Below, piece after piece: positions 44,381-62,024 of a stretch of 64,000 nucleotides of DNA. The stretch lies in contig LSRY02000005.1 in NCBI GenBank assembly GCA_001643675.2, positions 1 to 64,000 on the forward strand. The letters are read 5' to 3'. Made by a program: the position numbers and the translations under genes. The notes beneath the pieces were generated by a model, which saw only the letters and a program-made list of their open reading frames with translations, did not search any database and was not told where the DNA came from. Position 1 is the first letter of the stretch; each line of letters starts with the position of its first letter. This DNA comes from Monocercomonoides exilis PA203 (taxonomy: Eukaryota; Protista; Preaxostyla).

Positions 44381-47223
44381 CTGTTGATTCAATGCAGAAC
44401 ATATAGCAAAATATCGCAATGAAACCAAACAATTCAAAAATGCCCACGAGCCAACATCAAAAACATAAATTCACATTCGAATAAATCGAGAAATAAGCAC
44501 ACATATTTTTCTGCACATTGCTCAGCCTGCAGTTGGCCATCATCTTCAGGGTTCTCATTTTGTCCAATGCAGGCGCAACCATCCATCAGATTTTCTCCTC
44601 CTTCTAAATAAATAACAAAGTCAAAATTTTCGCTTTAAAGGAAGAAAATCGCAGAATAATGTGTACCCATCGTTATAGCTTGAGAAGGAGTTGTTTCTCC
44701 TCCCCCTTTTTCCATCTCCAATTTCACCACAAGAAAAATGGATTTCTTTTTGATCTTTGGACTATAATATAGTTTTTTAAGAAAAATTTTAGAAAAATTG
44801 AAATGAATTGTTTTTTTGATAAGAATAAAATTATCATATTATATTAGTTTTAAATTTTTATTTCATTATCGTTCGATTTTTGATTGCATCACAAAAAGAG
44901 ATAAGATAGTTAACTAGAAAACATACACGCAGAGCATTGAATGAAATTTAAAAAGTCAGCAAACATTGATGCATTTCAAATAGATTGAAACAGAATTCAA
45001 TGGACAGAAATTCGATTTTTTGTGTTTTTTGATCCAAAAATGGATGAGCTATTGGATGAAGAGCGTGAGATAACACATTTTGAAGAGGAAAGACGAGCTA
45101 AATGACGAGATGAGTAATGTGGTGTATTTGAAATAACAAGTGAAAGTCGTGTTCGTTGAATATGGGGCTTGACTGAAATACTAAAAAGAGATAGAAAGAT
45201 GAGAAAATATTAGATTCTCACTGCAGAGTTTAAAAAAAGTGAGAGAAAGACGAAAACAGCAAGTGAGTCTTCGTGCTAGCAGGGATGAATGGGAGGTGAG
45301 GAAAATGGATTGGAGTTGAATGCTTCGCATTTTCTGTCTTTGAAGTGTTTGGCGTTGGAGCAGAAAACAAGGTTGCCGCTTTGAGAATGCCATCCAGCAA
45401 AAGAAAGCAACCAATATTTCACAACACAACGACCATTCCTTCTTCTCCTTCTCTCGAAAGCACAAATCCTCAAGAAGCTTTCTGCGCCTTTCTTCATCTT
45501 TTCTGTTTTCGTCCCATCCAGCAATTTCGGTTTCCCCCTCACGAAATGCCGATGAAATGCAGCAGCTGAGCAACTCTTCTGATTGAAGATCCAAAAGAAG
45601 AGAGTGTGTGGAGATTGAGGGCAATCATCAGGGAATCGGGGTTTCTCATTGATTCGAGGGTTCGAGGGGTTCTGCTGCATTGCCTGCCAATTTGCACCTG
45701 AATTTGCTCTGCAGCAGACCAGGCTATGTGAATGTCTCAGAGGCATGTGCTGATGGTTTCTGTCTATCAGATTGCAGCGTGAGAGCCGAAACAAGAATTC
45801 TCTGCCATCAAAATCCCTTGATGCCTCCAAAATCCTGTTTTCAGCTCCTTTCCTCTCCTTTCCTCTCCAGGCCTGCTTCAAAGCTGCTGAACGAGGGCTG
45901 GCTGCTGCCTCTGAAAGATGATGCAACTGCTCAAAATGGCTTGCTCCAGACAATGCGGTGCAGAACCCATGTCTGCCTCTCTTCCCGTGCTCGGTGGAGC
46001 ACAGCATCCAACACCTGTGGCAGAAGTCAGAAGAATGCTCGTTCCCACTTCTTTTCCTGGTGCAGCTGCTGTTGAGGCGCAAGCACTCCGCGTGCTTCTC
46101 CATCGACTGACAGCACCCCTCCGCAAGTTCTGGTGGGGCATCTGGAGCCGATTGGTGAATGGCTGCTCCACGTTGGATGAGTGAAACACCACACCGACAA
46201 GGGATTTGGACGAGACTGAGTTATTTTTATTGTTTAACTTTTAATTATTTTGTGTTTTGTGATGAACTTTCTTTTTTTCTTTCTTTTTTTCTTTCTTTTT
46301 TCTTTCTGCTCCTTTTCGATCCAGCAAAGAGATTTCGTGCAAAGCAATAGCTTTCTGTTGCCCATCGGAAACGGCGCTTTCTCAAAAGCATCCGCTTCCC
46401 GAAAGTCGTGTGCAATCTCCTCCACAAAAAACACAGAAAATGAAAATGAAAAAATTCAAAAGAAAAAGAAAAAGAATAAGAATAAGAATAAGAATAAACC
46501 AGCAGCAATAAATCACAGAAACAGCACCAAACAGCTGCATGCTTGCTGCTGACACCATTCACCGAAAATCACACAAACACCCGAAAACACCCGAAAACAC
46601 CCGAAAACACACCCAACACCAAAACACTTCATCAAACACAACTCTCACCCACAGAAAGCCAAACGAACCCTTGTGCACTTCACAAGCAGACATGTCTGTC
46701 AGTTGAGATACCAAGAAAAACAAAAGGAGAGAACGAAACATTGCACGAACTCCACACAAGCATGCACAGGCTCTCGCGAAAATATCACAATCCCAACAAT
46801 CCCAACAATCCCAACAATCAGAACAATCAGAACAAAACACAAAACACAAAATCACAAAAACACAATTCAATCTGCATTTTTGCAAAAAGAACTCCAGGTT
46901 GATGTGCACTTCAGCAACAATATTCACAAAGAGCGGTTGCAAATGGCAGAAAGCGTCCATCAAAACAACAGATGGAAATAAAAGAATCGCTGACAGAAAA
47001 CAACGCAACAACAGCTGTCATTCAAACACGCACATGCCGTTTCCTCTTCCCTCTCAATATCACTCTTTCTTCCAAAAGGCAAACTCATTTCCATCTTTTG
47101 TTTTTCCTTCCGTTCAATTCAGATGCATCTTCTTTTCATTTCTTTTCATTTTTTTTGTTTTTGTTTTTGTTTTTTTTGTTTTTGTTTTTGTTTTTTTGTT
47201 TTTGTTTTGCCTTCCAAAACAAA

Positions 47224-50200
47224 CTAATGCCGCGTCTTGGGCATCGCCATCTGCTGCTGCATCTGCTCAAACAGCGACTCAATGCTTGCTCCTTCTCTCT
47301 TCCCAGAAGCCCCTGAATAGCTCTGTGCTCCACGCACATCACCCCCATGACCATGGTCTGGAGGCAATGGAATCAGCGGCCTTTCAGAGTGTGGCGGCGT
47401 GCCCGGATGCTGCCCATGGCTCTCCTTCAAATATTGACTCTGGTTCTGACTCTGGTTATGAATTTGATGCTGCTGCGTGTGTGGATACGAATTCTGATAC
47501 GGCCGACCATTTGAACGGGAATACGAATTCGAATGGGAATACGAAGAAGAGTGAGGCGGTGAGCGTGTCTGTGTGTGGGCGTGTGGATATGGATGTGAAT
47601 TTGAATGTGAATGTGGGTGTTGCTGAGGTTGAGGTTGAGGTTGAGGTTGAGGTTGAGGTTGAGGTTGAGGTTGAGGTTGATATTGATATTGAGGTTGAGG
47701 TTGTGGTTGTACTTGTTGTGGTTGTGGTTGTTGTGGTTGTGGTTGTTGTGGTTGTGGTTGTTGGAGTTGTGGTGGTTGTGGCAGAAGCTGCTGCAGATCC
47801 AAAGGCAGCTGCAGATCCAATGGCACATCCAATGGCACATCCAATGGCACAGTCAAAGGCATCTGCTGCTCATCCGGCGGCGTCTGAGCAATCCCCAGCG
47901 TCTGCGCCAAAAGCTGGATGAGCGATTTGATGTGTGCCTCTTGTGACTGTGCTGCCGGATCAGATGGATCAGAAGGAATTGAAGGATCAGAAGGAATAGA
48001 AGGAATAGAAGTGGCTGTTGTGGATGTGTCTGTGTGTGGCTGATCCATGGGCTTTTCAGGAAGACTCGGGAATTGCATATTGCTTGTGCTGAACGAAGGC
48101 TTCGTCCCAATCAGCGGTGCATGCATGTCTGTTTTGTCTGCAATATTCAATTTTTCTTCTTTTTCTATTTTGTCTGAATTATCCGCTTTTTCCGCTTTTT
48201 CTGTGTTTTCTGTTTTATCTGTGTTTTCTGCCAACTCTTTTCCTGAACAGTTCGCTGATTCCTCATTTTCCTCATTTTCCTCATTTTTTTCTTCCCTTTC
48301 CTCTTTCTCTTCCTCCTCCGTTTTTTTCTCGCCAATCTCATTTTCCTTTCCGTTTTCTTTCTCTTTCTCGCCCTCCTTCTCCTTCTCTTTTTCCTTCATC
48401 CACATCCACGATGCCTTCTCCTTCTCTCTCTCCTTCTCTCTCTCCTTCTCTCTCCCCTCCCTCCTCTCCATCCTCCCCTCTCCACCAAACACCGCGTCAA
48501 ACGACCTCCCCTGCCGAACCATCTCAAACGTGTTGATGAACGCCCGCGCCACCTCGTCTGTCCGGTACACCACATCCCCAACATCTCTGTTCAGCTCAAA
48601 CGGATCGTGGATGCACAGCGAGTGCCGGTGGTAGTCCAAGTCTGTGTCCCACCCCGTCACCGTCTTCGGGATGATGCACCCGTACTTCACACACGCCACA
48701 TGCCTGATCCGGATGAAGTTCCGCGCATAGTGATAGAAAAACCCCACCACAAGAGACGACAGCGGCTCTGTGTTCACTTTCCGCAGCGACACAAACGGAA
48801 ACACTGCATTCGCCCCATACAGCCCTGGATATTGCATCTGATTCATCTGCCCCATCTGCCCCATCTGACTCATCTGACTCATCTGATTCCCTTGTGCTGG
48901 GTGTGGTGGTGTCTGTGATTGTGATTGTGATTGTGAAGAGGGTGATGAAGTGTGCGTCGGAGTGGAGATAGCCGACGATGAATCAGAGGGAGACAATGTT
49001 GTTTTCGAAGGAGAAGAAGGAGAAGGAGAAGAAGGAGAAGAGGATGATGGAGAGGCATCAGTTGATGATGATGATGTTGTTGTTGTTGTTGTTGCTGTGT
49101 CATTGTGAGGAGGTGTTGATGGAGACGACGACGAAGAAGAAGAAGATAAAGTCTTCTCGGTGTGTGTGGGTGTTTTTTCTTCAGTTGTGGATGAATCATT
49201 TGTTGTTGATGATGATGATGAGAAATACTCGTTCAGAGGGAAGTCCGCAGGCGTCGGGTCTCTGTTGTTCAGCACCGTCGGGTTCTGGCTCAGCCACGGC
49301 TGCAGGTCTGTGCTGTATCTGATCCGCGCCCCTTTCACCACAATGTCCACCACCCGGCTCGGGTCTGACGCTGCTATGTATGCCTCCCCCTGCAGCGTCG
49401 GCAGCACCGGCGGCTGCCTCACCTGCAGATAGTTCAGCGCAAGAAGCGTGTACCCATACATCGACAGCGTCCCGTTCGCCGAGTCTGCCACCCCAAACTT
49501 CTTCGCCCAGTGCTTCACAACAAGCAGAAGTGGCCGCACCCTCTCGTCCAGCATGCAGTATGTCTTGATCAGCTCTGAGTTGTAGATCCCAAACACGTTG
49601 TCGATGCAGATGTCGCAGTCGCGAAGGACTGGCGAGTGTGTTGTTGTTGCTGTTGCTGCTGCTTCTGCTTCTGCTTCTGCTGGAGAAGAAGAAGATGATG
49701 ATGGTGATGGTGATGGTGATGGAGAAGTATATGGAGATGGTGAAGGGGAAGGAGATGATGATGATGTTGATGATGCAGAAGACGAATCACCATTCGCATG
49801 ACTCGATTTCTCTTTCTCTTTCTCTTTCTCTTTCTCTTTCTCTTTCTCTTTCTCTTTCTCTTTCTCTTTCTTCTTTCTTGCCTTCTCCTTCTCTCCATTC
49901 GCACTGACACACAAGTGCAGCGGCACCTCAAACTTCACAATCGGCACACGCGCCGTCGGGATGCATCGGATGATCTTGAATCCGTTCTCTTTCAGACAGT
50001 CTCTGATCTCATTCACTGTGATCTTCTCCTTCAGTGACCCCTCCAACTCTGCACCAGACGATGGATTCGATGTCTGTTTAGTTGGGCTGCTTGTCTTTTC
50101 ATCTCCATCTTCTTTCTTCTTGTCTCCATCTTCTTTCCCACCCCACCCCCTTCCGCTTTCTCCATCTTCCACGCATTCTCCGCCTCCTTCCCCATGTTCT

Positions 50201-53200
50201 CCTCCGGCTTCCACACATCATACTTGTACGGAAACACCCCCTCTGCAAACGGATCCCCCTCTGCATACCTCCCGTCTGCCTCTGCCCCAACCGTCTTCAG
50301 CCACACCCTCAGCGCTGCTGGCGTGTCCTCTGCCGGCGGCCTCTTCTTCATCAGCTCTGCCGACTTCTTCACCCGGTTGTATGCCCCGTGTGTCAGCACA
50401 ACCAGGTCGATGTCGCTGTTCACTGTGAACACTGTGCTCCGTGTGGACCCATACAACTCTACACGCTTCACCACATCTGAGTGCAACACCAACACCAGAA
50501 ACATATGAAATGATTGAATCAAAGGGGAAAAATAAAATTTATAAAATTAATAAAACATAAATATGTGTTATTGAGTTATTAGCTAATTATAAAGCACACC
50601 TGGCATATACTTCCTGAGTGCTGCATCCACCCTGTCTCTGATCGCCAGCACCGACGACATCAGCGACGGCGGATGTGCTTCTGCCACAAACCTCGCCAGC
50701 TCGTCGTTGAATGCCTTCGACACACGAAACAGAGGCGGCGCATTGACTGTGATCACACCCAGACGCTGTGTGAACTGGAATGGCATGGTGTGGTGCTGGG
50801 GAGGCAGATGAGGCTGCGCGAGCGAGTGGCCGTGCGTGTGCGAGGAGGGGAACATGGGCAGAATGAGCTGCGGCTGTGGCTGCAGTTGAGGCTGTTGATG
50901 CTGTTGATGCTGATGTTGATGCTGATGTTGCTGTTGTTGTTGCTGTTGCTGTTGCTGCTGCTGCTGCTGCTGTTGCAATTGAAACTGAGATTGTGGTTGT
51001 GGTTGTGGTTGTGGTTGTGGTTGTATTTTGTTCGGAGATTGAGAATTGAACAAGGGCTGAGGCTGAGGCTGAGGCTGTGGCTGTGGTTGTGGCTGAGGAC
51101 GCAGAAGGAGTTTGGGCTGAGATTGAAATTGAAATTGTGGTTGTGGTTGGGGTTGGGGTTGGGATTGTGGATGAGGTTGCGGATGAGGTTGAGGTTGGGG
51201 TTGAGGTTGAGGTTGAAGTTGGAATTTCATCTGTGTCTGTGCTTGTATCTGGGGAAGAGGCTGAGGGAGAGGCTGAGGAAGTGACAAAGGATGGGCCAAC
51301 AGATTCAGCTGGGGCTTTGGCTGTGTCTGCAATGGCGATTGTAATTGCAATTGAAATTGGGGCTGCAATTGATATTGTGATTGTGATTGTGATTGTGAAT
51401 GTGATTGAGATTGCGATTGCGACTGAGACTGCAGTCTGAGCTGTGGATGAAGCTGAGGCTGGGGAAGAGGCAGGAGCTGCGAGCGGTTGACGGAATCTGG
51501 GGACAATGAAGATGAGGAAATAGGCGAAGAATAAGAAGAGGAAGAGGAAGAGGATGAGGATGATGATGGTGATGGTGATGATGAATATGAAGAATACGAA
51601 GAAGAATACGAAGAAGAATACGAAGATGTCGTTGGTGCATTTGATAGCAAAGCATTGTCTCGCTTCTGATTCTGCAGCAAAGGCTGCTGATTTTGCTGCC
51701 TCAACAGCTTGTTTTGTGAAGTGAGCGAATCCGAATAAGAAGAATAAGACTTCGTGTTCGTCTGCCTGGTGTTTGTGATCAAAGGAGAAGTGTTTGAGTT
51801 GGAAGGCGTGTGTGCTGAAGAGATGGGTGCAGATGGCTGTGACTTCTGTGTGTTTAAAGAAGAGTAGGAAGAGGATGGATAATAGGACGCTTTGAAGCCT
51901 TTGCTTGGCTCTGAGGATGCTGCAGGCGAATACGACGACGATGACGACGGCGATGGCGATGGCGATGATGATGATGAAGAGGAAGAAGAAGCTGATGAAG
52001 ATGACGATGACGAATATGAAAATGAAGAAGGGGGTGGTTGTGGAGAAGAAGAGGTGGAAGAAGAAGAAGAAGAAGAAGACAATTTAGCTGCTGGAAGGCG
52101 AGGGGGAGGAGGGAGTATGTGGATAATTGGTGAAGACTGAATATTTTGGGCTATTTGATGAGCTGGTGGGTCTGGCAACAGAGCATTCTGAGTAGCCTTC
52201 GCACTTGCGTCTGTCTTTTTCTGAGATAAAGATAATAATGATGAGGCTGAGGATGGTGACAATGATGACGACGATGATGGAGATGACGATGACGAAGTTG
52301 CAGAGGATGTGCGAGTGCGCTGAGATGGGCTTGGACGCCTTTGTGAGGAAGGTATGGTGGCTGTTGAAGGAACTGTGGTGGAAGATTTGTTTTGAGAGGA
52401 GGAGTAATAATGCTTACTGTTTGCTAAAGCTGTAGGATGTCTAAGAGGCGACGCTGAAGAAGAATAAGAATAAGAGGAGGAGGAGGAGGAGGAGTAGAAA
52501 TTAGTTGATGGAGGAGAAGTAGAAGAAGAAATAGTAGTTGAAGAAGAATGAGAGGGTGGAGGATGGTAAGAAGGAGTGCTTCGGTTGTATCCATAGGGAA
52601 GCAACCGGTCACATGAGCTGCCGCAGGAAAAGGCAACTGTTTAATAGAGTTGATAAAGTGCCACGGAAGTTAAAATAAGAAAGAAAATAAAAAATAAAAA
52701 ATAAAAGAAAACTCAATAGTTATAAAAAAAAAAAAGAAAGAAAATAGAGTGCAATGAACGTATATGCATATATATCTATTTTTTCTTAGCAAAAAAAGGA
52801 TTCATGATTTTCTCTTTACGCACCATTTCCGCTATCACATCCAACGATTCGTGACTGCTTCCCGCAGAAGCAGCTCACTGTCACTTTGTGAGAGCAAGGA
52901 GGGCAAGGGCCCGGATGGCATTTCAAAGGACACGGATGGGGGCAAATGCCTTTCCTTTTCTTCCCACATGTGCCACCACAGGAATGCGGAAGAACACCAA
53001 TTTTTCTGATGGGATTATTAACTTTTCCGCAGTAGCAGAAATACTGTGAAGGAATTGATTTTATTGAAGCATGACACCTATTTATATGCAAAAAAATGTG
53101 TAAGTTAATGATAAATATTAAATATAAAGCTACCATGGGCAAGGCCATTCCGTTTGTTTTGAAGTGTTATTTGCTAATTCCTGAAGGGCATCAGTTTTTG

Positions 53201-53442
53201 CTATTGCCCAGTTTTGTATGCATTTCAAATGAAAAAGCTGAAAGCATTGATGGCAACTCCATATTTCAGCTGATGGATCAATACAATCTTTGCAGCTTTA
53301 TCATTTACAAATGAAAGTGTTCATATGCAATTAAAAATAAAACTACACTGATAAAGCATTATGTTTAGCAATTTACATACAGAATGCAAAGAGAAGAATT
53401 TGCATTAACCTCTGCAATTAGCTCATCTCTGCGAGAATCCAT
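47224..53442 (-). CDS. NFX1-type RING/NF-X1 zinc finger - low-complexity linker - Cid1/TUTase-family nucleotidyltransferase fusion (left-arm copy, ~1,920 aa)
   Basis: Mirror copy of 53757-59975. The C-terminal 996-aa ORF (47224-50214) is intact. It has the same frame break between the GS/DxD segment and the rest of the catalytic domain (~50135-50150). Confidence 0.8.
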
Positions 53443-53756
53443 TTTCCAAAATAAAACTGATCAAAATGAAACCTTTAACAAAATTTGTTTTCAAAAATTA
53501 TCACAAATTGGAATAGTTATTATTCTCTCAAGGAATAATAAATAATAAAACGATAAGGAGAATCGTTTTTGAACAAAAAATTCACAAACAATGAATCTGT
53601 TAAGATTTGTTTCACGTATTTTTAAATAATTACTAAGAATTTTTTTCGTTTTATTATTAATTATTCCTTGAGAGAATAATAACTATTCCAATTTGTGATA
53701 ATTTTTGAAAACAAATTTTGTTAAAGGTTTCATTTTGATCAGTTTTATTTTGGAAA
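53443..53756. promoter_or_regulatory. Probable shared bidirectional promoter spanning the palindrome centre
   Basis: Only ~315 bp of AT-rich DNA separates the two divergent ATGs (53442 on -, 53757 on +). Confidence 0.5.
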
Positions 53757-56700
53757 ATGGATTCTCGCAGAGATGAGCTAATTGCAGAGGTTAATGCAAA
53801 TTCTTCTCTTTGCATTCTGTATGTAAATTGCTAAACATAATGCTTTATCAGTGTAGTTTTATTTTTAATTGCATATGAACACTTTCATTTGTAAATGATA
53901 AAGCTGCAAAGATTGTATTGATCCATCAGCTGAAATATGGAGTTGCCATCAATGCTTTCAGCTTTTTCATTTGAAATGCATACAAAACTGGGCAATAGCA
54001 AAAACTGATGCCCTTCAGGAATTAGCAAATAACACTTCAAAACAAACGGAATGGCCTTGCCCATGGTAGCTTTATATTTAATATTTATCATTAACTTACA
54101 CATTTTTTTGCATATAAATAGGTGTCATGCTTCAATAAAATCAATTCCTTCACAGTATTTCTGCTACTGCGGAAAAGTTAATAATCCCATCAGAAAAATT
54201 GGTGTTCTTCCGCATTCCTGTGGTGGCACATGTGGGAAGAAAAGGAAAGGCATTTGCCCCCATCCGTGTCCTTTGAAATGCCATCCGGGCCCTTGCCCTC
54301 CTTGCTCTCACAAAGTGACAGTGAGCTGCTTCTGCGGGAAGCAGTCACGAATCGTTGGATGTGATAGCGGAAATGGTGCGTAAAGAGAAAATCATGAATC
54401 CTTTTTTTGCTAAGAAAAAATAGATATATATGCATATACGTTCATTGCACTCTATTTTCTTTCTTTTTTTTTTTTATAACTATTGAGTTTTCTTTTATTT
54501 TTTATTTTTTATTTTCTTTCTTATTTTAACTTCCGTGGCACTTTATCAACTCTATTAAACAGTTGCCTTTTCCTGCGGCAGCTCATGTGACCGGTTGCTT
54601 CCCTATGGATACAACCGAAGCACTCCTTCTTACCATCCTCCACCCTCTCATTCTTCTTCAACTACTATTTCTTCTTCTACTTCTCCTCCATCAACTAATT
54701 TCTACTCCTCCTCCTCCTCCTCCTCTTATTCTTATTCTTCTTCAGCGTCGCCTCTTAGACATCCTACAGCTTTAGCAAACAGTAAGCATTATTACTCCTC
54801 CTCTCAAAACAAATCTTCCACCACAGTTCCTTCAACAGCCACCATACCTTCCTCACAAAGGCGTCCAAGCCCATCTCAGCGCACTCGCACATCCTCTGCA
54901 ACTTCGTCATCGTCATCTCCATCATCGTCGTCATCATTGTCACCATCCTCAGCCTCATCATTATTATCTTTATCTCAGAAAAAGACAGACGCAAGTGCGA
55001 AGGCTACTCAGAATGCTCTGTTGCCAGACCCACCAGCTCATCAAATAGCCCAAAATATTCAGTCTTCACCAATTATCCACATACTCCCTCCTCCCCCTCG
55101 CCTTCCAGCAGCTAAATTGTCTTCTTCTTCTTCTTCTTCTTCCACCTCTTCTTCTCCACAACCACCCCCTTCTTCATTTTCATATTCGTCATCGTCATCT
55201 TCATCAGCTTCTTCTTCCTCTTCATCATCATCATCGCCATCGCCATCGCCGTCGTCATCGTCGTCGTATTCGCCTGCAGCATCCTCAGAGCCAAGCAAAG
55301 GCTTCAAAGCGTCCTATTATCCATCCTCTTCCTACTCTTCTTTAAACACACAGAAGTCACAGCCATCTGCACCCATCTCTTCAGCACACACGCCTTCCAA
55401 CTCAAACACTTCTCCTTTGATCACAAACACCAGGCAGACGAACACGAAGTCTTATTCTTCTTATTCGGATTCGCTCACTTCACAAAACAAGCTGTTGAGG
55501 CAGCAAAATCAGCAGCCTTTGCTGCAGAATCAGAAGCGAGACAATGCTTTGCTATCAAATGCACCAACGACATCTTCGTATTCTTCTTCGTATTCTTCTT
55601 CGTATTCTTCATATTCATCATCACCATCACCATCATCATCCTCATCCTCTTCCTCTTCCTCTTCTTATTCTTCGCCTATTTCCTCATCTTCATTGTCCCC
55701 AGATTCCGTCAACCGCTCGCAGCTCCTGCCTCTTCCCCAGCCTCAGCTTCATCCACAGCTCAGACTGCAGTCTCAGTCGCAATCGCAATCTCAATCACAT
55801 TCACAATCACAATCACAATCACAATATCAATTGCAGCCCCAATTTCAATTGCAATTACAATCGCCATTGCAGACACAGCCAAAGCCCCAGCTGAATCTGT
55901 TGGCCCATCCTTTGTCACTTCCTCAGCCTCTCCCTCAGCCTCTTCCCCAGATACAAGCACAGACACAGATGAAATTCCAACTTCAACCTCAACCTCAACC
56001 CCAACCTCAACCTCATCCGCAACCTCATCCACAATCCCAACCCCAACCCCAACCACAACCACAATTTCAATTTCAATCTCAGCCCAAACTCCTTCTGCGT
56101 CCTCAGCCACAACCACAGCCACAGCCTCAGCCTCAGCCTCAGCCCTTGTTCAATTCTCAATCTCCGAACAAAATACAACCACAACCACAACCACAACCAC
56201 AACCACAATCTCAGTTTCAATTGCAACAGCAGCAGCAGCAGCAGCAACAGCAACAGCAACAACAACAGCAACATCAGCATCAACATCAGCATCAACAGCA
56301 TCAACAGCCTCAACTGCAGCCACAGCCGCAGCTCATTCTGCCCATGTTCCCCTCCTCGCACACGCACGGCCACTCGCTCGCGCAGCCTCATCTGCCTCCC
56401 CAGCACCACACCATGCCATTCCAGTTCACACAGCGTCTGGGTGTGATCACAGTCAATGCGCCGCCTCTGTTTCGTGTGTCGAAGGCATTCAACGACGAGC
56501 TGGCGAGGTTTGTGGCAGAAGCACATCCGCCGTCGCTGATGTCGTCGGTGCTGGCGATCAGAGACAGGGTGGATGCAGCACTCAGGAAGTATATGCCAGG
56601 TGTGCTTTATAATTAGCTAATAACTCAATAACACATATTTATGTTTTATTAATTTTATAAATTTTATTTTTCCCCTTTGATTCAATCATTTCATATGTTT

Positions 56701-59700
56701 CTGGTGTTGGTGTTGCACTCAGATGTGGTGAAGCGTGTAGAGTTGTATGGGTCCACACGGAGCACAGTGTTCACAGTGAACAGCGACATCGACCTGGTTG
56801 TGCTGACACACGGGGCATACAACCGGGTGAAGAAGTCGGCAGAGCTGATGAAGAAGAGGCCGCCGGCAGAGGACACGCCAGCAGCGCTGAGGGTGTGGCT
56901 GAAGACGGTTGGGGCAGAGGCAGACGGGAGGTATGCAGAGGGGGATCCGTTTGCAGAGGGGGTGTTTCCGTACAAGTATGATGTGTGGAAGCCGGAGGAG
57001 AACATGGGGAAGGAGGCGGAGAATGCGTGGAAGATGGAGAAAGCGGAAGGGGGTGGGGTGGGAAAGAAGATGGAGACAAGAAGAAAGAAGATGGAGATGA
57101 AAAGACAAGCAGCCCAACTAAACAGACATCGAATCCATCGTCTGGTGCAGAGTTGGAGGGGTCACTGAAGGAGAAGATCACAGTGAATGAGATCAGAGAC
57201 TGTCTGAAAGAGAACGGATTCAAGATCATCCGATGCATCCCGACGGCGCGTGTGCCGATTGTGAAGTTTGAGGTGCCGCTGCACTTGTGTGTCAGTGCGA
57301 ATGGAGAGAAGGAGAAGGCAAGAAAGAAGAAAGAGAAAGAGAAAGAGAAAGAGAAAGAGAAAGAGAAAGAGAAAGAGAAAGAGAAAGAGAAATCGAGTCA
57401 TGCGAATGGTGATTCGTCTTCTGCATCATCAACATCATCATCATCTCCTTCCCCTTCACCATCTCCATATACTTCTCCATCACCATCACCATCACCATCA
57501 TCATCTTCTTCTTCTCCAGCAGAAGCAGAAGCAGAAGCAGCAGCAACAGCAACAACAACACACTCGCCAGTCCTTCGCGACTGCGACATCTGCATCGACA
57601 ACGTGTTTGGGATCTACAACTCAGAGCTGATCAAGACATACTGCATGCTGGACGAGAGGGTGCGGCCACTTCTGCTTGTTGTGAAGCACTGGGCGAAGAA
57701 GTTTGGGGTGGCAGACTCGGCGAACGGGACGCTGTCGATGTATGGGTACACGCTTCTTGCGCTGAACTATCTGCAGGTGAGGCAGCCGCCGGTGCTGCCG
57801 ACGCTGCAGGGGGAGGCATACATAGCAGCGTCAGACCCGAGCCGGGTGGTGGACATTGTGGTGAAAGGGGCGCGGATCAGATACAGCACAGACCTGCAGC
57901 CGTGGCTGAGCCAGAACCCGACGGTGCTGAACAACAGAGACCCGACGCCTGCGGACTTCCCTCTGAACGAGTATTTCTCATCATCATCATCAACAACAAA
58001 TGATTCATCCACAACTGAAGAAAAAACACCCACACACACCGAGAAGACTTTATCTTCTTCTTCTTCGTCGTCGTCTCCATCAACACCTCCTCACAATGAC
58101 ACAGCAACAACAACAACATCATCATCATCATCATCAACTGATGCCTCTCCATCATCCTCTTCTCCTTCTCCTTCTCCTCCTTCTACTCCTTCGAAAACAA
58201 CATTGTCTCCCTCTGATTCATCGTCGGCTATCTCCACTCCGACGCACACTTCATCACCCTCTTCACAATCACAATCACAATCACAGACACCACCACACCC
58301 AGCACAAGGGAATCAGATGAGTCAGATGAGTCAGATGGGGCAGATGGGGCAGATGAATCAGATGCAATATCCAGGGCTGTATGGGGCGAATGCAGTGTTT
58401 CCGTTTGTGTCGCTGCGGAAAGTGAACACAGAGCCGCTGTCGTCTCTTGTGGTGGGGTTTTTCTATCACTATGCGCGGAACTTCATCCGGATCAGGCATG
58501 TGGCGTGTGTGAAGTACGGGTGCATCATCCCGAAGACGGTGACGGGGTGGGACACAGACTTGGACTACCACCGGCACTCGCTGTGCATCCACGATCCGTT
58601 TGAGCTGAACAGAGATGTTGGGGATGTGGTGTACCGGACAGACGAGGTGGCGCGGGCGTTCATCAACACGTTTGAGATGGTTCGGCAGGGGAGGTCGTTT
58701 GACGCGGTGTTTGGTGGAGAGGGGAGGATGGAGAGGAGGGAGGGGAGAGAGAAGGAGAGAGAGAAGGAGAGAGAGAAGGAGAAGGCATCGTGGATGTGGA
58801 TGAAGGAAAAAGAGAAGGAGAAGGAGGGCGAGAAAGAGAAAGAAAAACGGAAAGGAAAATGAGATTGGCGAGAAAAAACGGAGGAGGAAGAGAAAGAGGA
58901 AAGGGAAGAAAAAAATGAGGAAAATGAGGAAAATGAGGAATCAGCGAACTGTTCAGGAAAAGAGTTGGCAGAAAACACAGATAAAACAGAAAACACAGAA
59001 AAAGCGGAAAAAGCGGATAATTCAGACAAAATAGAAAAAGAAGAAAAATTGAATATTGCAGACAAAACAGACATGCATGCACCGCTGATTGGGACGAAGC
59101 CTTCGTTCAGCACAAGCAATATGCAATTCCCGAGTCTTCCTGAAAAGCCCATGGATCAGCCACACACAGACACATCCACAACAGCCACTTCTATTCCTTC
59201 TATTCCTTCTGATCCTTCAATTCCTTCTGATCCATCTGATCCGGCAGCACAGTCACAAGAGGCACACATCAAATCGCTCATCCAGCTTTTGGCGCAGACG
59301 CTGGGGATTGCTCAGACGCCGCCGGATGAGCAGCAGATGCCTTTGACTGTGCCATTGGATGTGCCATTGGATGTGCCATTGGATCTGCAGCTGCCTTTGG
59401 ATCTGCAGCAGCTTCTGCCACAACCACCACAACTCCAACAACCACAACCACAACAACCACAACCACAACAACCACAACCACAACAAGTACAACCACAACC
59501 TCAACCTCAATATCAATATCAACCTCAACCTCAACCTCAACCTCAACCTCAACCTCAACCTCAACCTCAACCTCAGCAACACCCACATTCACATTCAAAT
59601 TCACATCCATATCCACACGCCCACACACAGACACGCTCACCGCCTCACTCTTCTTCGTATTCCCATTCGAATTCGTATTCCCGTTCAAATGGTCGGCCGT

Positions 59701-59975
59701 ATCAGAATTCGTATCCACACACGCAGCAGCATCAAATTCATAACCAGAGTCAGAACCAGAGTCAATATTTGAAGGAGAGCCATGGGCAGCATCCGGGCAC
59801 GCCGCCACACTCTGAAAGGCCGCTGATTCCATTGCCTCCAGACCATGGTCATGGGGGTGATGTGCGTGGAGCACAGAGCTATTCAGGGGCTTCTGGGAAG
59901 AGAGAAGGAGCAAGCATTGAGTCGCTGTTTGAGCAGATGCAGCAGCAGATGGCGATGCCCAAGACGCGGCATTAG
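53757..59975 (+). CDS. NFX1-type RING/NF-X1 zinc finger - low-complexity linker - Cid1/TUTase-family nucleotidyltransferase fusion (right-arm copy)
   Basis: Exons 53757-53818, 53904-54065, 54122-54375, 54563-56599 and 56723-59975; all introns GT-AG and phase-compatible. Zinc-finger part: CILC..IWSCHQC..FHLKCIQNWA..WPCPWC, YFCYCGK, PHSCGGTC..CPHPCPLKCHPGPCPPC. Catalytic part: YGS..NSDIDL, ARVPIVKF, DCDICIDN..NSELIKTY..DERVRPL..VKHWAK, GTLSMYGYTLL, and PAP-associated NTEPLSSLVVGFFYHYA..IHDPFEL. Frame break ~57050-57066 and a local +1/-1 pair at ~58843-58878. Confidence 0.8.
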
Positions 59976-60999
59976 TTTGTTTTGGAAGGCAAAACAAAAA
60001 CAAAAAACAAAAACAAAAAAACAAAAACAAAAACAAAAAAAATGAAAAGAAATGAAAAGAAGATGCATCTGAATTGAACGGAAGGAAAAACAAAAGATGG
60101 AAATGAGTTTGCCTTTTGGAAGAAAGAGTGATATTGAGAGGGAAGAGGAAACGGCATGTGCGTGTTTGAATGACAGCTGTTGTTGCGTTGTTTTCTGTCA
60201 GCGATTCTTTTATTTCCATCTGTTGTTTTGATGGACGCTTTCTGCCATTTGCAACCGCTCTTTGTGAATATTGTTGCTGAAGTGCACATCAACCTGGAGT
60301 TCTTTTTGCAAAAATGCAGATTGAATTGTGTTTTTGTGATTTTGTGTTTTGTGTTTTGTTCTGATTGTTCTGATTGTTGGGATTGTTGGGATTGTTGGGA
60401 TTGTGATATTTTCGCGAGAGCCTGTGCATGCTTGTGTGGAGTTCGTGCAATGTTTCGTTCTCTCCTTTTGTTTTTCTTGGTATCTCAACTGACAGACATG
60501 TCTGCTTGTGAAGTGCACAAGGGTTCGTTTGGCTTTCTGTGGGTGAGAGTTGTGTTTGATGAAGTGTTTTGGTGTTGGGTGTGTTTTCGGGTGTTTTCGG
60601 GTGTTTTCGGGTGTTTGTGTGATTTTCGGTGAATGGTGTCAGCAGCAAGCATGCAGCTGTTTGGTGCTGTTTCTGTGATTTATTGCTGCTGGTTTATTCT
60701 TATTCTTATTCTTATTCTTTTTCTTTTTCTTTTGAATTTTTTCATTTTCATTTTCTGTGTTTTTTGTGGAGGAGATTGCACACGACTTTCGGGAAGCGGA
60801 TGCTTTTGAGAAAGCGCCGTTTCCGATGGGCAACAGAAAGCTATTGCTTTGCACGAAATCTCTTTGCTGGATCGAAAAGGAGCAGAAAGAAAAAAGAAAG
60901 AAAAAAGAAAGAAAAAAGAAAGTTCATCACAAAACACAAAATAATTAAAAGTTAAACAATAAAAATAACTCAGTCTCGTCCAAATCCCTTGTCGGTGTG

Positions 61000-62024
61000 G
61001 TGTTTCACTCATCCAACGTGGAGCAGCCATTCACCAATCGGCTCCAGATGCCCCACCAGAACTTGCGGAGGGGTGCTGTCAGTCGATGGAGAAGCACGCG
61101 GAGTGCTTGCGCCTCAACAGCAGCTGCACCAGGAAAAGAAGTGGGAACGAGCATTCTTCTGACTTCTGCCACAGGTGTTGGATGCTGTGCTCCACCGAGC
61201 ACGGGAAGAGAGGCAGACATGGGTTCTGCACCGCATTGTCTGGAGCAAGCCATTTTGAGCAGTTGCATCATCTTTCAGAGGCAGCAGCCAGCCCTCGTTC
61301 AGCAGCTTTGAAGCAGGCCTGGAGAGGAAAGGAGAGGAAAGGAGCTGAAAACAGGATTTTGGAGGCATCAAGGGATTTTGATGGCAGAGAATTCTTGTTT
61401 CGGCTCTCACGCTGCAATCTGATAGACAGAAACCATCAGCACATGCCTCTGAGACATTCACATAGCCTGGTCTGCTGCAGAGCAAATTCAGGTGCAAATT
61501 GGCAGGCAATGCAGCAGAACCCCTCGAACCCTCGAATCAATGAGAAACCCCGATTCCCTGATGATTGCCCTCAATCTCCACACACTCTCTTCTTTTGGAT
61601 CTTCAATCAGAAGAGTTGCTCAGCTGCTGCATTTCATCGGCATTTCGTGAGGGGGAAACCGAAATTGCTGGATGGGACGAAAACAGAAAAGATGAAGAAA
61701 GGCGCAGAAAGCTTCTTGAGGATTTGTGCTTTCGAGAGAAGGAGAAGAAGGAATGGTCGTTGTGTTGTGAAATATTGGTTGCTTTCTTTTGCTGGATGGC
61801 ATTCTCAAAGCGGCAACCTTGTTTTCTGCTCCAACGCCAAATACCTCAAAGACAGAAAATGCGAAGCATTCAACCCCAATCCATTTTCCTCACCTCTCGT
61901 TCAGCCCTGCTCGCATGATGTTACACTTGTTGTTTTCATCATTTTGTTGGTTCTCAGACCAATCAATGAAAGCCAGTTCCATCGCTCTTCTCATCGAAAC
62001 AGAGAAAGAAATGAAAGAAGATGA
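61000..62024 (+). other. GC-richer unassigned ORF/pseudogene region in the outer palindrome arm (mirror at ~45250-46190)
   Basis: A 312-aa ORF (61086-62024) and overlapping shorter frames with no recognisable motifs. The mirror ORF is 275 aa with a different end. Confidence 0.25.

Follow-up and report, generated by a model that had tools for sequence, protein, structure and literature searches.

The first 64,000 nucleotides of contig LSRY02000005.1 in the Oxford Nanopore Technologies (ONT) assembly of the preaxostylan protist Monocercomonoides exilis (hereafter the window) carry a predicted gene in which a RING and zinc-finger head related to NFX1 precedes a nucleotidyltransferase of the Cid1 family. 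The model of its 5′ end was built from an all-frame translation of 53640–54700; exons were searched one by one and were concatenated solely for codon counting. Five exons on the forward strand are joined by four introns of 85, 56, 187 and 123 nt, all GT..AG, phase-compatible and 18–26% G+C (Table 1). Exon 2, which holds the RING core, is flanked by the 85- and 56-nt introns, with G+C contents of 24% and 18%. Introns across the M. exilis genome have a mean length of 119 nt and 27.6% G+C (PMC8767320), and we count the match of the four introns to this norm in favour of a single fused gene. A first-pass annotation had proposed that four phase-compatible introns join pieces appearing as separate open reading frames, and all four proved to be AT-rich with GT-AG borders. 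The junction between exons 3 and 4 on which that proposal turned (donor 54376, acceptor 54562) also reads as it had been written, ..CDSGN-V-AFSCGSSCDRLLPYG... Its claim of one gene over 53757–59975 stands in part: the introns do join the NFX1-like head to the enzyme exon, but there is no single clean frame, and exon 5 needs a frame change within 56985–57168.

Table 1. Features of the gene and of the palindrome around it (positions in the window).
Feature	Position	Strand	Content
Exon 1	53757..53818	+	ATG, 18 residues, then the first RING CxxC (..SSLCIL-); homologous to C70 NFX1 exon 1; the published MONOS_16027 protein also begins here
Exon 2	53904..54065	+	Core of the NFX1-type C4HC3 RING/PHD finger; 162 nt; skipped in the published model
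Exon 3	54122..54375	+	Last RING ligands (CPWC), PHSCG motif and one intact NF-X1 finger
Exon 4	54563..56599	+	Single 678-codon open frame: NFX1-derived start, ~600 aa rich in Ser/Pro/Gln, then (by pattern only) a putative first nucleotidyltransferase helix
Start of exon 4	54563..54743	+	Remnant of the next NF-X1 finger, then Ser tract; detectable C70 homology stops here (3′ breakpoint)
Exon 5	56723..59975	+	Cid1-family nucleotidyltransferase and low-complexity C terminus
LYGS motif	56743-56754	+	GS motif
DID motif	56785-56793	+	DxD motif (DIDL)
Third catalytic Asp	57585-57587	+	In CDICIDN; aligned to the catalytic residue that is mutated in URT1 7xs4
PAP_assoc	58437-58610	+	PF03828
R ending DxxExxR	58611-58613	+	By alignment to URT1
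Mirror twin of the whole gene	47224..53442	-	On the other palindrome arm; last exon open for 996 aa, no TGA
Palindrome	45246..61943	.	16.7 kb, 86-nt spacer at 53557-53642

The RING of the head retains all eight C4HC3 ligands (CxxC .. CxxC .. H..C .. CxxC), spread over exons 1–3 with 18 residues ahead of them, and is homologous to the RING of the parental gene described below. When exon 2 alone was compared with Pfam, zf-RING_15 (E = 4e-4) and PHD (E = 0.015) were returned, both below cut-off. The one intact NF-X1 finger, CPHPCPLKCHPGPCPPC, scores 13.5 bits against PF01422, below the cut-off of 22.7, and a genome scan gave no PF01422 match at E ≤ 0.001 within the window. The next finger, in exon 4, reads ..PYGYNRSTPSYH.. 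and has all four zinc ligands replaced (C>Y, H>N, C>S, C>Y), in agreement with the earlier description of a second NF-X1 repeat that degenerates through replacement of its Cys and His. In the parent, the same finger reads ..SCGYHRCTLPCH..Ser tract..CPPC, the Ser tract being a short insert inside the finger. Low-complexity inserts within fingers seem to be the rule in M. exilis.

In its order of an N-terminal C4HC3 PHD/RING followed by an NF-X1-type finger (C-x-H-x-C-x3-C-H-x-G-x-C-x2-C), the head resembles NFX1, NFXL1, FAP1 and shuttle craft. However, the NFX1 family is defined by a PAM2 motif, a PHD/RING finger, six to eight NF-X1 fingers and an R3H domain (PMC8067315), whereas here a single intact finger takes the place of an array of six or more, the finger after it lacks its ligands, and no R3H match was found in any exon translation (nor, at E ≤ 0.01, in the large exon of the parent). 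With only the RING and one finger kept, the head is an NFX1-derived module rather than a member of the NFX1 family.

Exon 4 carries the frame of the head onward. None of 2,000 local shuffles of the exon stayed open (0/2000), and the other forward frames hold 5 and 9 stops. No Pfam domain was found in its translation. The stretch of ~600 aa rich in Ser and Gln/Pro, reported earlier as leading to a Cid1-family domain, is present, and the Pfam domains lie downstream of it. Attachment of the head to the enzyme is supported by three features of this region: the frame inherited from NFX1 runs unbroken for 678 codons to the intron before ..VELYGS, intron 3 has kept the parental splice sites, and exon 4 has no ATG before codon 468.

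The translation of exon 5 matched NTP_transf_2 (27 bits, cut-off 21), MTPAP-like_central (40 bits) and PAP_assoc (PF03828; 39.1 bits, cut-off 22.6; 44.7 bits in the genome scan). The nucleotidyltransferase motifs hG[GS], [DE]h[DE]h and h[DE]h are all present, and in hhalign the exon aligns from three residues before the GS motif with 95% probability. The best solved match was Arabidopsis URT1 (E = 6e-29), followed by CutA (PDB 6ywn, the third-best solved match), TUT4, GLD2 and Cid1. The nearest natural relatives are proteins of Blattamonas nauphoetae, another member of Preaxostyla, at 36–42% identity; an NF-X1 or RING domain was found in none of the nine top relatives scanned. A word search with the catalytic frame also returned the paralogue MONOS_5787 [Monocercomonoides exilis] among its matches. 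The predicted enzyme shares with URT1 (PDB 7xs4, 6l3f), Schizosaccharomyces pombe Cid1 and human TUT4/TUT7 the nucleotidyltransferase palm with GS motif, DxD motif and third Asp, plus PAP_assoc. It differs from them in having an Arg for Cid1 H336, long low-complexity loop inserts and an NFX1-derived N-terminal module, and in having no CCHC or C2H2 fingers (Pfam gave no PF00098 or C2H2 match in any exon translation). By motifs and domains we assign the predicted protein to the Cid1 family, with the caveat of the frame in exon 5.

The Arg bears on which nucleotide the enzyme would add. In the DxxExxH cluster of Cid1, H336 is the main determinant for uridine triphosphate (UTP) (PMC5689010). The nucleotide-recognition motif is DPFETSH in URT1 and DPFELNR here, and the uridylyltransferase signature is thus absent. 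Fungal CutA enzymes, which add C and U (PDB 6ywn), also have an Arg at the position of Cid1 H336 (R557 in TtCutA), where it contributes to the preference for cytidine triphosphate (PMC5689010). CutA, however, reads ExxNxxR, whereas the protein here reads DxxExxR and keeps the Asp and Glu of Cid1, so that its nucleotide choice cannot be read from sequence. The initial description as like a terminal uridylyltransferase (TUTase) holds for the Cid1-family motifs and PAP_assoc; because the UTP-selecting His is Arg, the label is too specific and a TUTase is not established.

The head has a recognizable parent. In a genome-wide DNA search with 53643–54640 as query, we found both arms of the palindrome in which the gene lies and one further place, C70:102536-103133, with 86% identity. 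Weaker matches continue to C70:103894 and, on the window side, to 54743. The duplicated piece is window 53708–54743, ~1 kb long, which starts 49 bp upstream of the ATG and stops in the middle of the fifth exon of the parent. Homology spans exons and introns, the latter being 66–87% identical in pairwise alignment. The parent (G000:C70:102585-109641) is an NFX1-type gene with the same small 5′ exons and the same intron positions, and its protein is 91% identical to the head over exons 1–3 (145/159). Its small exons are followed by a 1672-codon open exon with PF01422 matches above cut-off; in the window, everything after the parent's fifth exon is replaced by a low-complexity linker and the nucleotidyltransferase. 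In that large exon (C70:104626-109641), no more than two NF-X1 fingers pass the Pfam cut-off.

Homology to C70 fades at ~54743, inside a TCn-rich tract of Ser codons, and a 3′ breakpoint in simple repeat fits recombination or template switching between Ser-codon tracts, either of which may have made it. Within the duplicated piece, the window copy carries a 228-bp in-frame deletion at 54293/54294 (C70:103122-103381), between two 12-nt repeats encoding (G)PCPPC. The deletion removed an intron of the parent together with the adjoining ends of the two exons on either side, and it merged parental fingers 1 and 2 into the hybrid finger of exon 3. For the enzyme part, the whole-genome DNA search gave no second copy beyond the arms, other matches to 54640–58860 being short low-complexity repeats. 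Separate full-length NFX1-type genes are present on C70, C6 and C13, and unfused PAP_assoc enzymes are encoded at seven further loci on C55, C28, C30, C14, C5 (two) and C8, so both parental functions exist unfused in the genome. The first-pass annotation had offered, as one possibility, a young chimera made from a truncated NFX1 gene. Its origin is supported by the 86% DNA identity of the head, introns included, to the 5′ end of the C70 gene.

Its youth is not. Over the 159 codons of exons 1–3, the window and C70 copies differ at 32 synonymous and 15 non-synonymous positions, giving a synonymous rate (dS) of 0.42, a non-synonymous rate (dN) of 0.041 and a dN/dS of 0.096. By exon, dN/dS is 0.12, 0.10 and 0.07 for exons 1, 2 and 3, and exon 2 accounts for 10 of the synonymous and 6 of the non-synonymous differences. 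The non-synonymous share is 32%, against 66% expected if the window copy drifted neutrally and the parent was fully constrained (binomial P = 2e-6). In the finger remnant of exon 4, dN is 0.215, five times the value for exons 1–3. The RING and first finger are thus under purifying selection and have been translated for most of the time since the duplication. With dS at 0.42, the duplication is old, not young, and dN/dS is low in every one of exons 1–3. Selection on the head is by itself no proof of its attachment to the enzyme.

The explanation we favour, and consider probable though some way from secure, is a lineage-specific chimeric gene of M. exilis in which a duplicate of the NFX1 5′ end is fused in frame to a Cid1-family nucleotidyltransferase. 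In its formation, ~1 kb from the 5′ end of the C70 NFX1 gene was duplicated, and it is joined, within a Ser-codon tract, to coding sequence leading in frame to the enzyme. Parental splice sites have been kept and the RING and one NF-X1 finger held by purifying selection; one finger was deleted and the next left without ligands. The predicted product is one protein of ~1,900 aa, in which the RING and one NF-X1 finger are followed by a disordered linker of ~650 aa and then by the nucleotidyltransferase.

Several observations weigh against a chimeric gene of this kind, among them the state of exon 5. The frame with LYGS and DID terminates at a TGA (57166–57168), and the frame with ARVPIVKF, the third Asp and PAP_assoc opens at 56985, so that a frame change is needed within 56985–57168. 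The break is identical in both palindrome arms. An intron was considered as the remedy and none was adopted: there are 127 frame-restoring GT..AG pairs in the interval, all at 40–60% G+C and with no pyrimidine tract.

These facts allow a reading in which the enzyme half is decaying, a real frameshift having spread to both arms through gene conversion. In that case the product would end at TGA 57166–57168, keeping GS and DxD and losing the third Asp and PAP_assoc, and only the RING/finger head with a low-complexity tail would be functional. The shared break fits such decay, as does the lack of anything intron-like among the frame-restoring pairs (0/127, compared with the 18–26% G+C of the four real introns). 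An additional in-frame TGA at 58860–58862 in the forward copy points the same way; it is absent from the mirror copy, which is open for 996–997 aa. Yet past the break the frame is open for 625 aa in the forward arm and 996 aa in the reverse arm, with catalytic and PAP_assoc motifs intact, which would be unexpected for a long-dead frame. The interval 56985–57168 is moreover rich in runs of G and of A, a typical setting for ONT errors. The TGA at 58860 is flanked by homopolymer differences between the arms (A5 versus A4 at 58843 and A6 versus A7 at 58872; mirror positions 48357 and 48327), and these length differences compensate each other, leaving 30 nt out of frame in the forward copy and giving rise to the TGA. 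Homopolymer frameshifts survived Nanopolish and Pilon in this assembly, and its authors report that multi-copy regions were less well polished (PMC8767320). The frame breaks of exon 5 are probably homopolymer errors of a poorly polished duplicated region, and we regard decay of the enzyme as unlikely.

Other observations against the chimeric gene come from the exon 4 border and from public records. The end of exon 4 may, by pattern only, be the first helix of the enzyme; its last 78 aa (..ELARFVAEAHPPS..RKYMP) gave no significant match by BLASTP against the best relative or by hhalign against a 25-sequence profile. The published protein MONOS_16027, compared over its first ~400 aa, passes from exon 1 straight to exon 3 (..SSLCIL-CHASIKS..), omitting the RING exon at 53904–54065; its junction between exons 3 and 4 is the one given above. 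The gene's own protein was not found in a search of 1.84 billion representatives (best 36%) or in word searches with the catalytic frame and exon 4. With the parental NFX1 exon as query, all matches were distant NFX1 proteins. Public RNA runs containing the stretch are limited to four small metatranscriptome runs from one 2024 study, labelled 'synthetic metagenome', in which 84% of its words occur; this share (0.84) fits several transcript models equally, exons not being resolvable. Such runs may be mock or simulated, not M. exilis cultures. No relatives with the same architecture are known, so cross-species conservation is not usable.

As for the skipped RING exon, it is as constrained as its neighbours (dN/dS 0.10), which argues that MONOS_16027 is wrong at exon 2 or describes a minor isoform. 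Where Table S3 of the genome paper lists MONOS_16027, it gives mouse TUT4 as the best MitoMiner hit and nucleotidyltransferase activity as the Gene Ontology term (PMC8767320); this scoring and the shared junction of exons 3 and 4 speak for the fused gene. A fusion has thus been publicly predicted before, but with the RING exon missing and with no comment made on it. In the literature searched, no paper mentioned NF-X1 together with PAP_assoc, and none contained the MONOS_16027 tag.

A less probable alternative is that the locus yields two products, a small RING protein by retention of intron 3 and an enzyme started from an internal ATG of exon 4. Read-through of donor 54376 meets a stop two codons on, right after ..CDSGNGA, in-frame ATGs occur from codon 468 of exon 4 onward, and the selection measured on the head is compatible with a head apart from the enzyme. 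However, only one frame stays open through the 468 codons ahead of the first ATG, and it is the one inherited from NFX1; intron 3 shares its splice sites with the parent, and the public model joins the parts. We consider two separate products quite improbable.

The surroundings of the gene, a palindrome with two mirror copies, had gone unmentioned in the first-pass annotation. Its arms (45246–53556 and 53643–61943) carry the copies head to head, with ATGs at 53757 (+) and 53442 (−), 314 bp apart. The inner arms are ~99.9% identical; identity is ~90% at 61500–62000, with no homology beyond, and this decay towards the edges argues that the palindrome is real and not a fold-back read. The arms differ by two substitutions beside the spacer, six at 58119–58185 and a few length differences in homopolymers and short repeats. 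That the NFX1 piece, the palindrome or both arose from a chimeric or fold-back nanopore read is scarcely credible: the nanopore (Canu) assembly, the near-identity of the inner arms and the homopolymer nature of some arm differences would allow it, but the NFX1 piece and its only other copy differ by 14%, which makes the piece a distinct locus; the palindrome lies within the contig between unique flanks, with arms that are ~90% identical at the edges and differ by the six substitutions; and the MONOS_16027 tag dates from an earlier 454 assembly and has no 'fu' (fusion) suffix. We rejected artefact as the main explanation because the parent is diverged, arm identity decays towards the edges and the arms carry substitutions.

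The six substitutions (mirror 49014–49080) all lie in short codon repeats (CAT, TCC/TTC) and could be real differences or consensus noise. At the outer, diverged edge of the palindrome there is an open reading frame of 312 aa (61086–62024; mirror ~45181–46103). The window opens, within positions 1–300, with CCCTAA telomere repeats that include occasional variant units, which place a chromosome end there and the gene ~54 kb from the telomere.

If the chimeric gene is expressed as one protein, its NFX1-derived head may act as a targeting module, binding a ubiquitin-conjugating enzyme (E2), another protein or nucleic acid. The enzyme would add untemplated nucleotides to RNA 3′ ends; its motif, DxxExxR and not DxxExxH, does not tell which nucleotide. 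Zinc-finger modules are known to serve RNA enzymes elsewhere, either within one protein or in a partner protein: in ZNFX1, NF-X1 fingers are joined to an RNA helicase, and in TRAMP, Trf4 works with the zinc-knuckle partners Air1/2. Both differ from the present gene in their enzymes and fingers, and neither pairs an NFX1 RING with a nucleotidyltransferase. A more far-reaching possibility is one polypeptide, maintained by selection in this amitochondriate oxymonad, with an active NFX1-type RING ubiquitin ligase (E3) head and an active RNA 3′-tailing enzyme, in which ubiquitylation would be physically coupled to tailing; such a coupling was the other possibility offered in the first-pass annotation. 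We consider this rather unlikely; if true, an RNA and its bound protein could be marked in one encounter. The combination of domains is not known to have been described elsewhere.

The analysis has two consequences for the M. exilis reference: the public model MONOS_16027 is corrected, as it leaves out a RING exon that is under selective constraint, and the assembly is likely still to contain homopolymer errors in a duplicated region near the telomere. The case concerns one species, with a frame break left in the enzyme half. Within that scope it shows clearly how partial duplication of a gene can give rise to a new domain architecture: the parent and both breakpoints are identified, the captured module contains an internal repeat-mediated deletion, and selection on it is measurable. 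Human NFX1 proteins touch poly(A) biology through PABPC binding (PMC8067315). Should the fused protein exist, it would be the first known case of an NFX1 RING head on a tailing enzyme.

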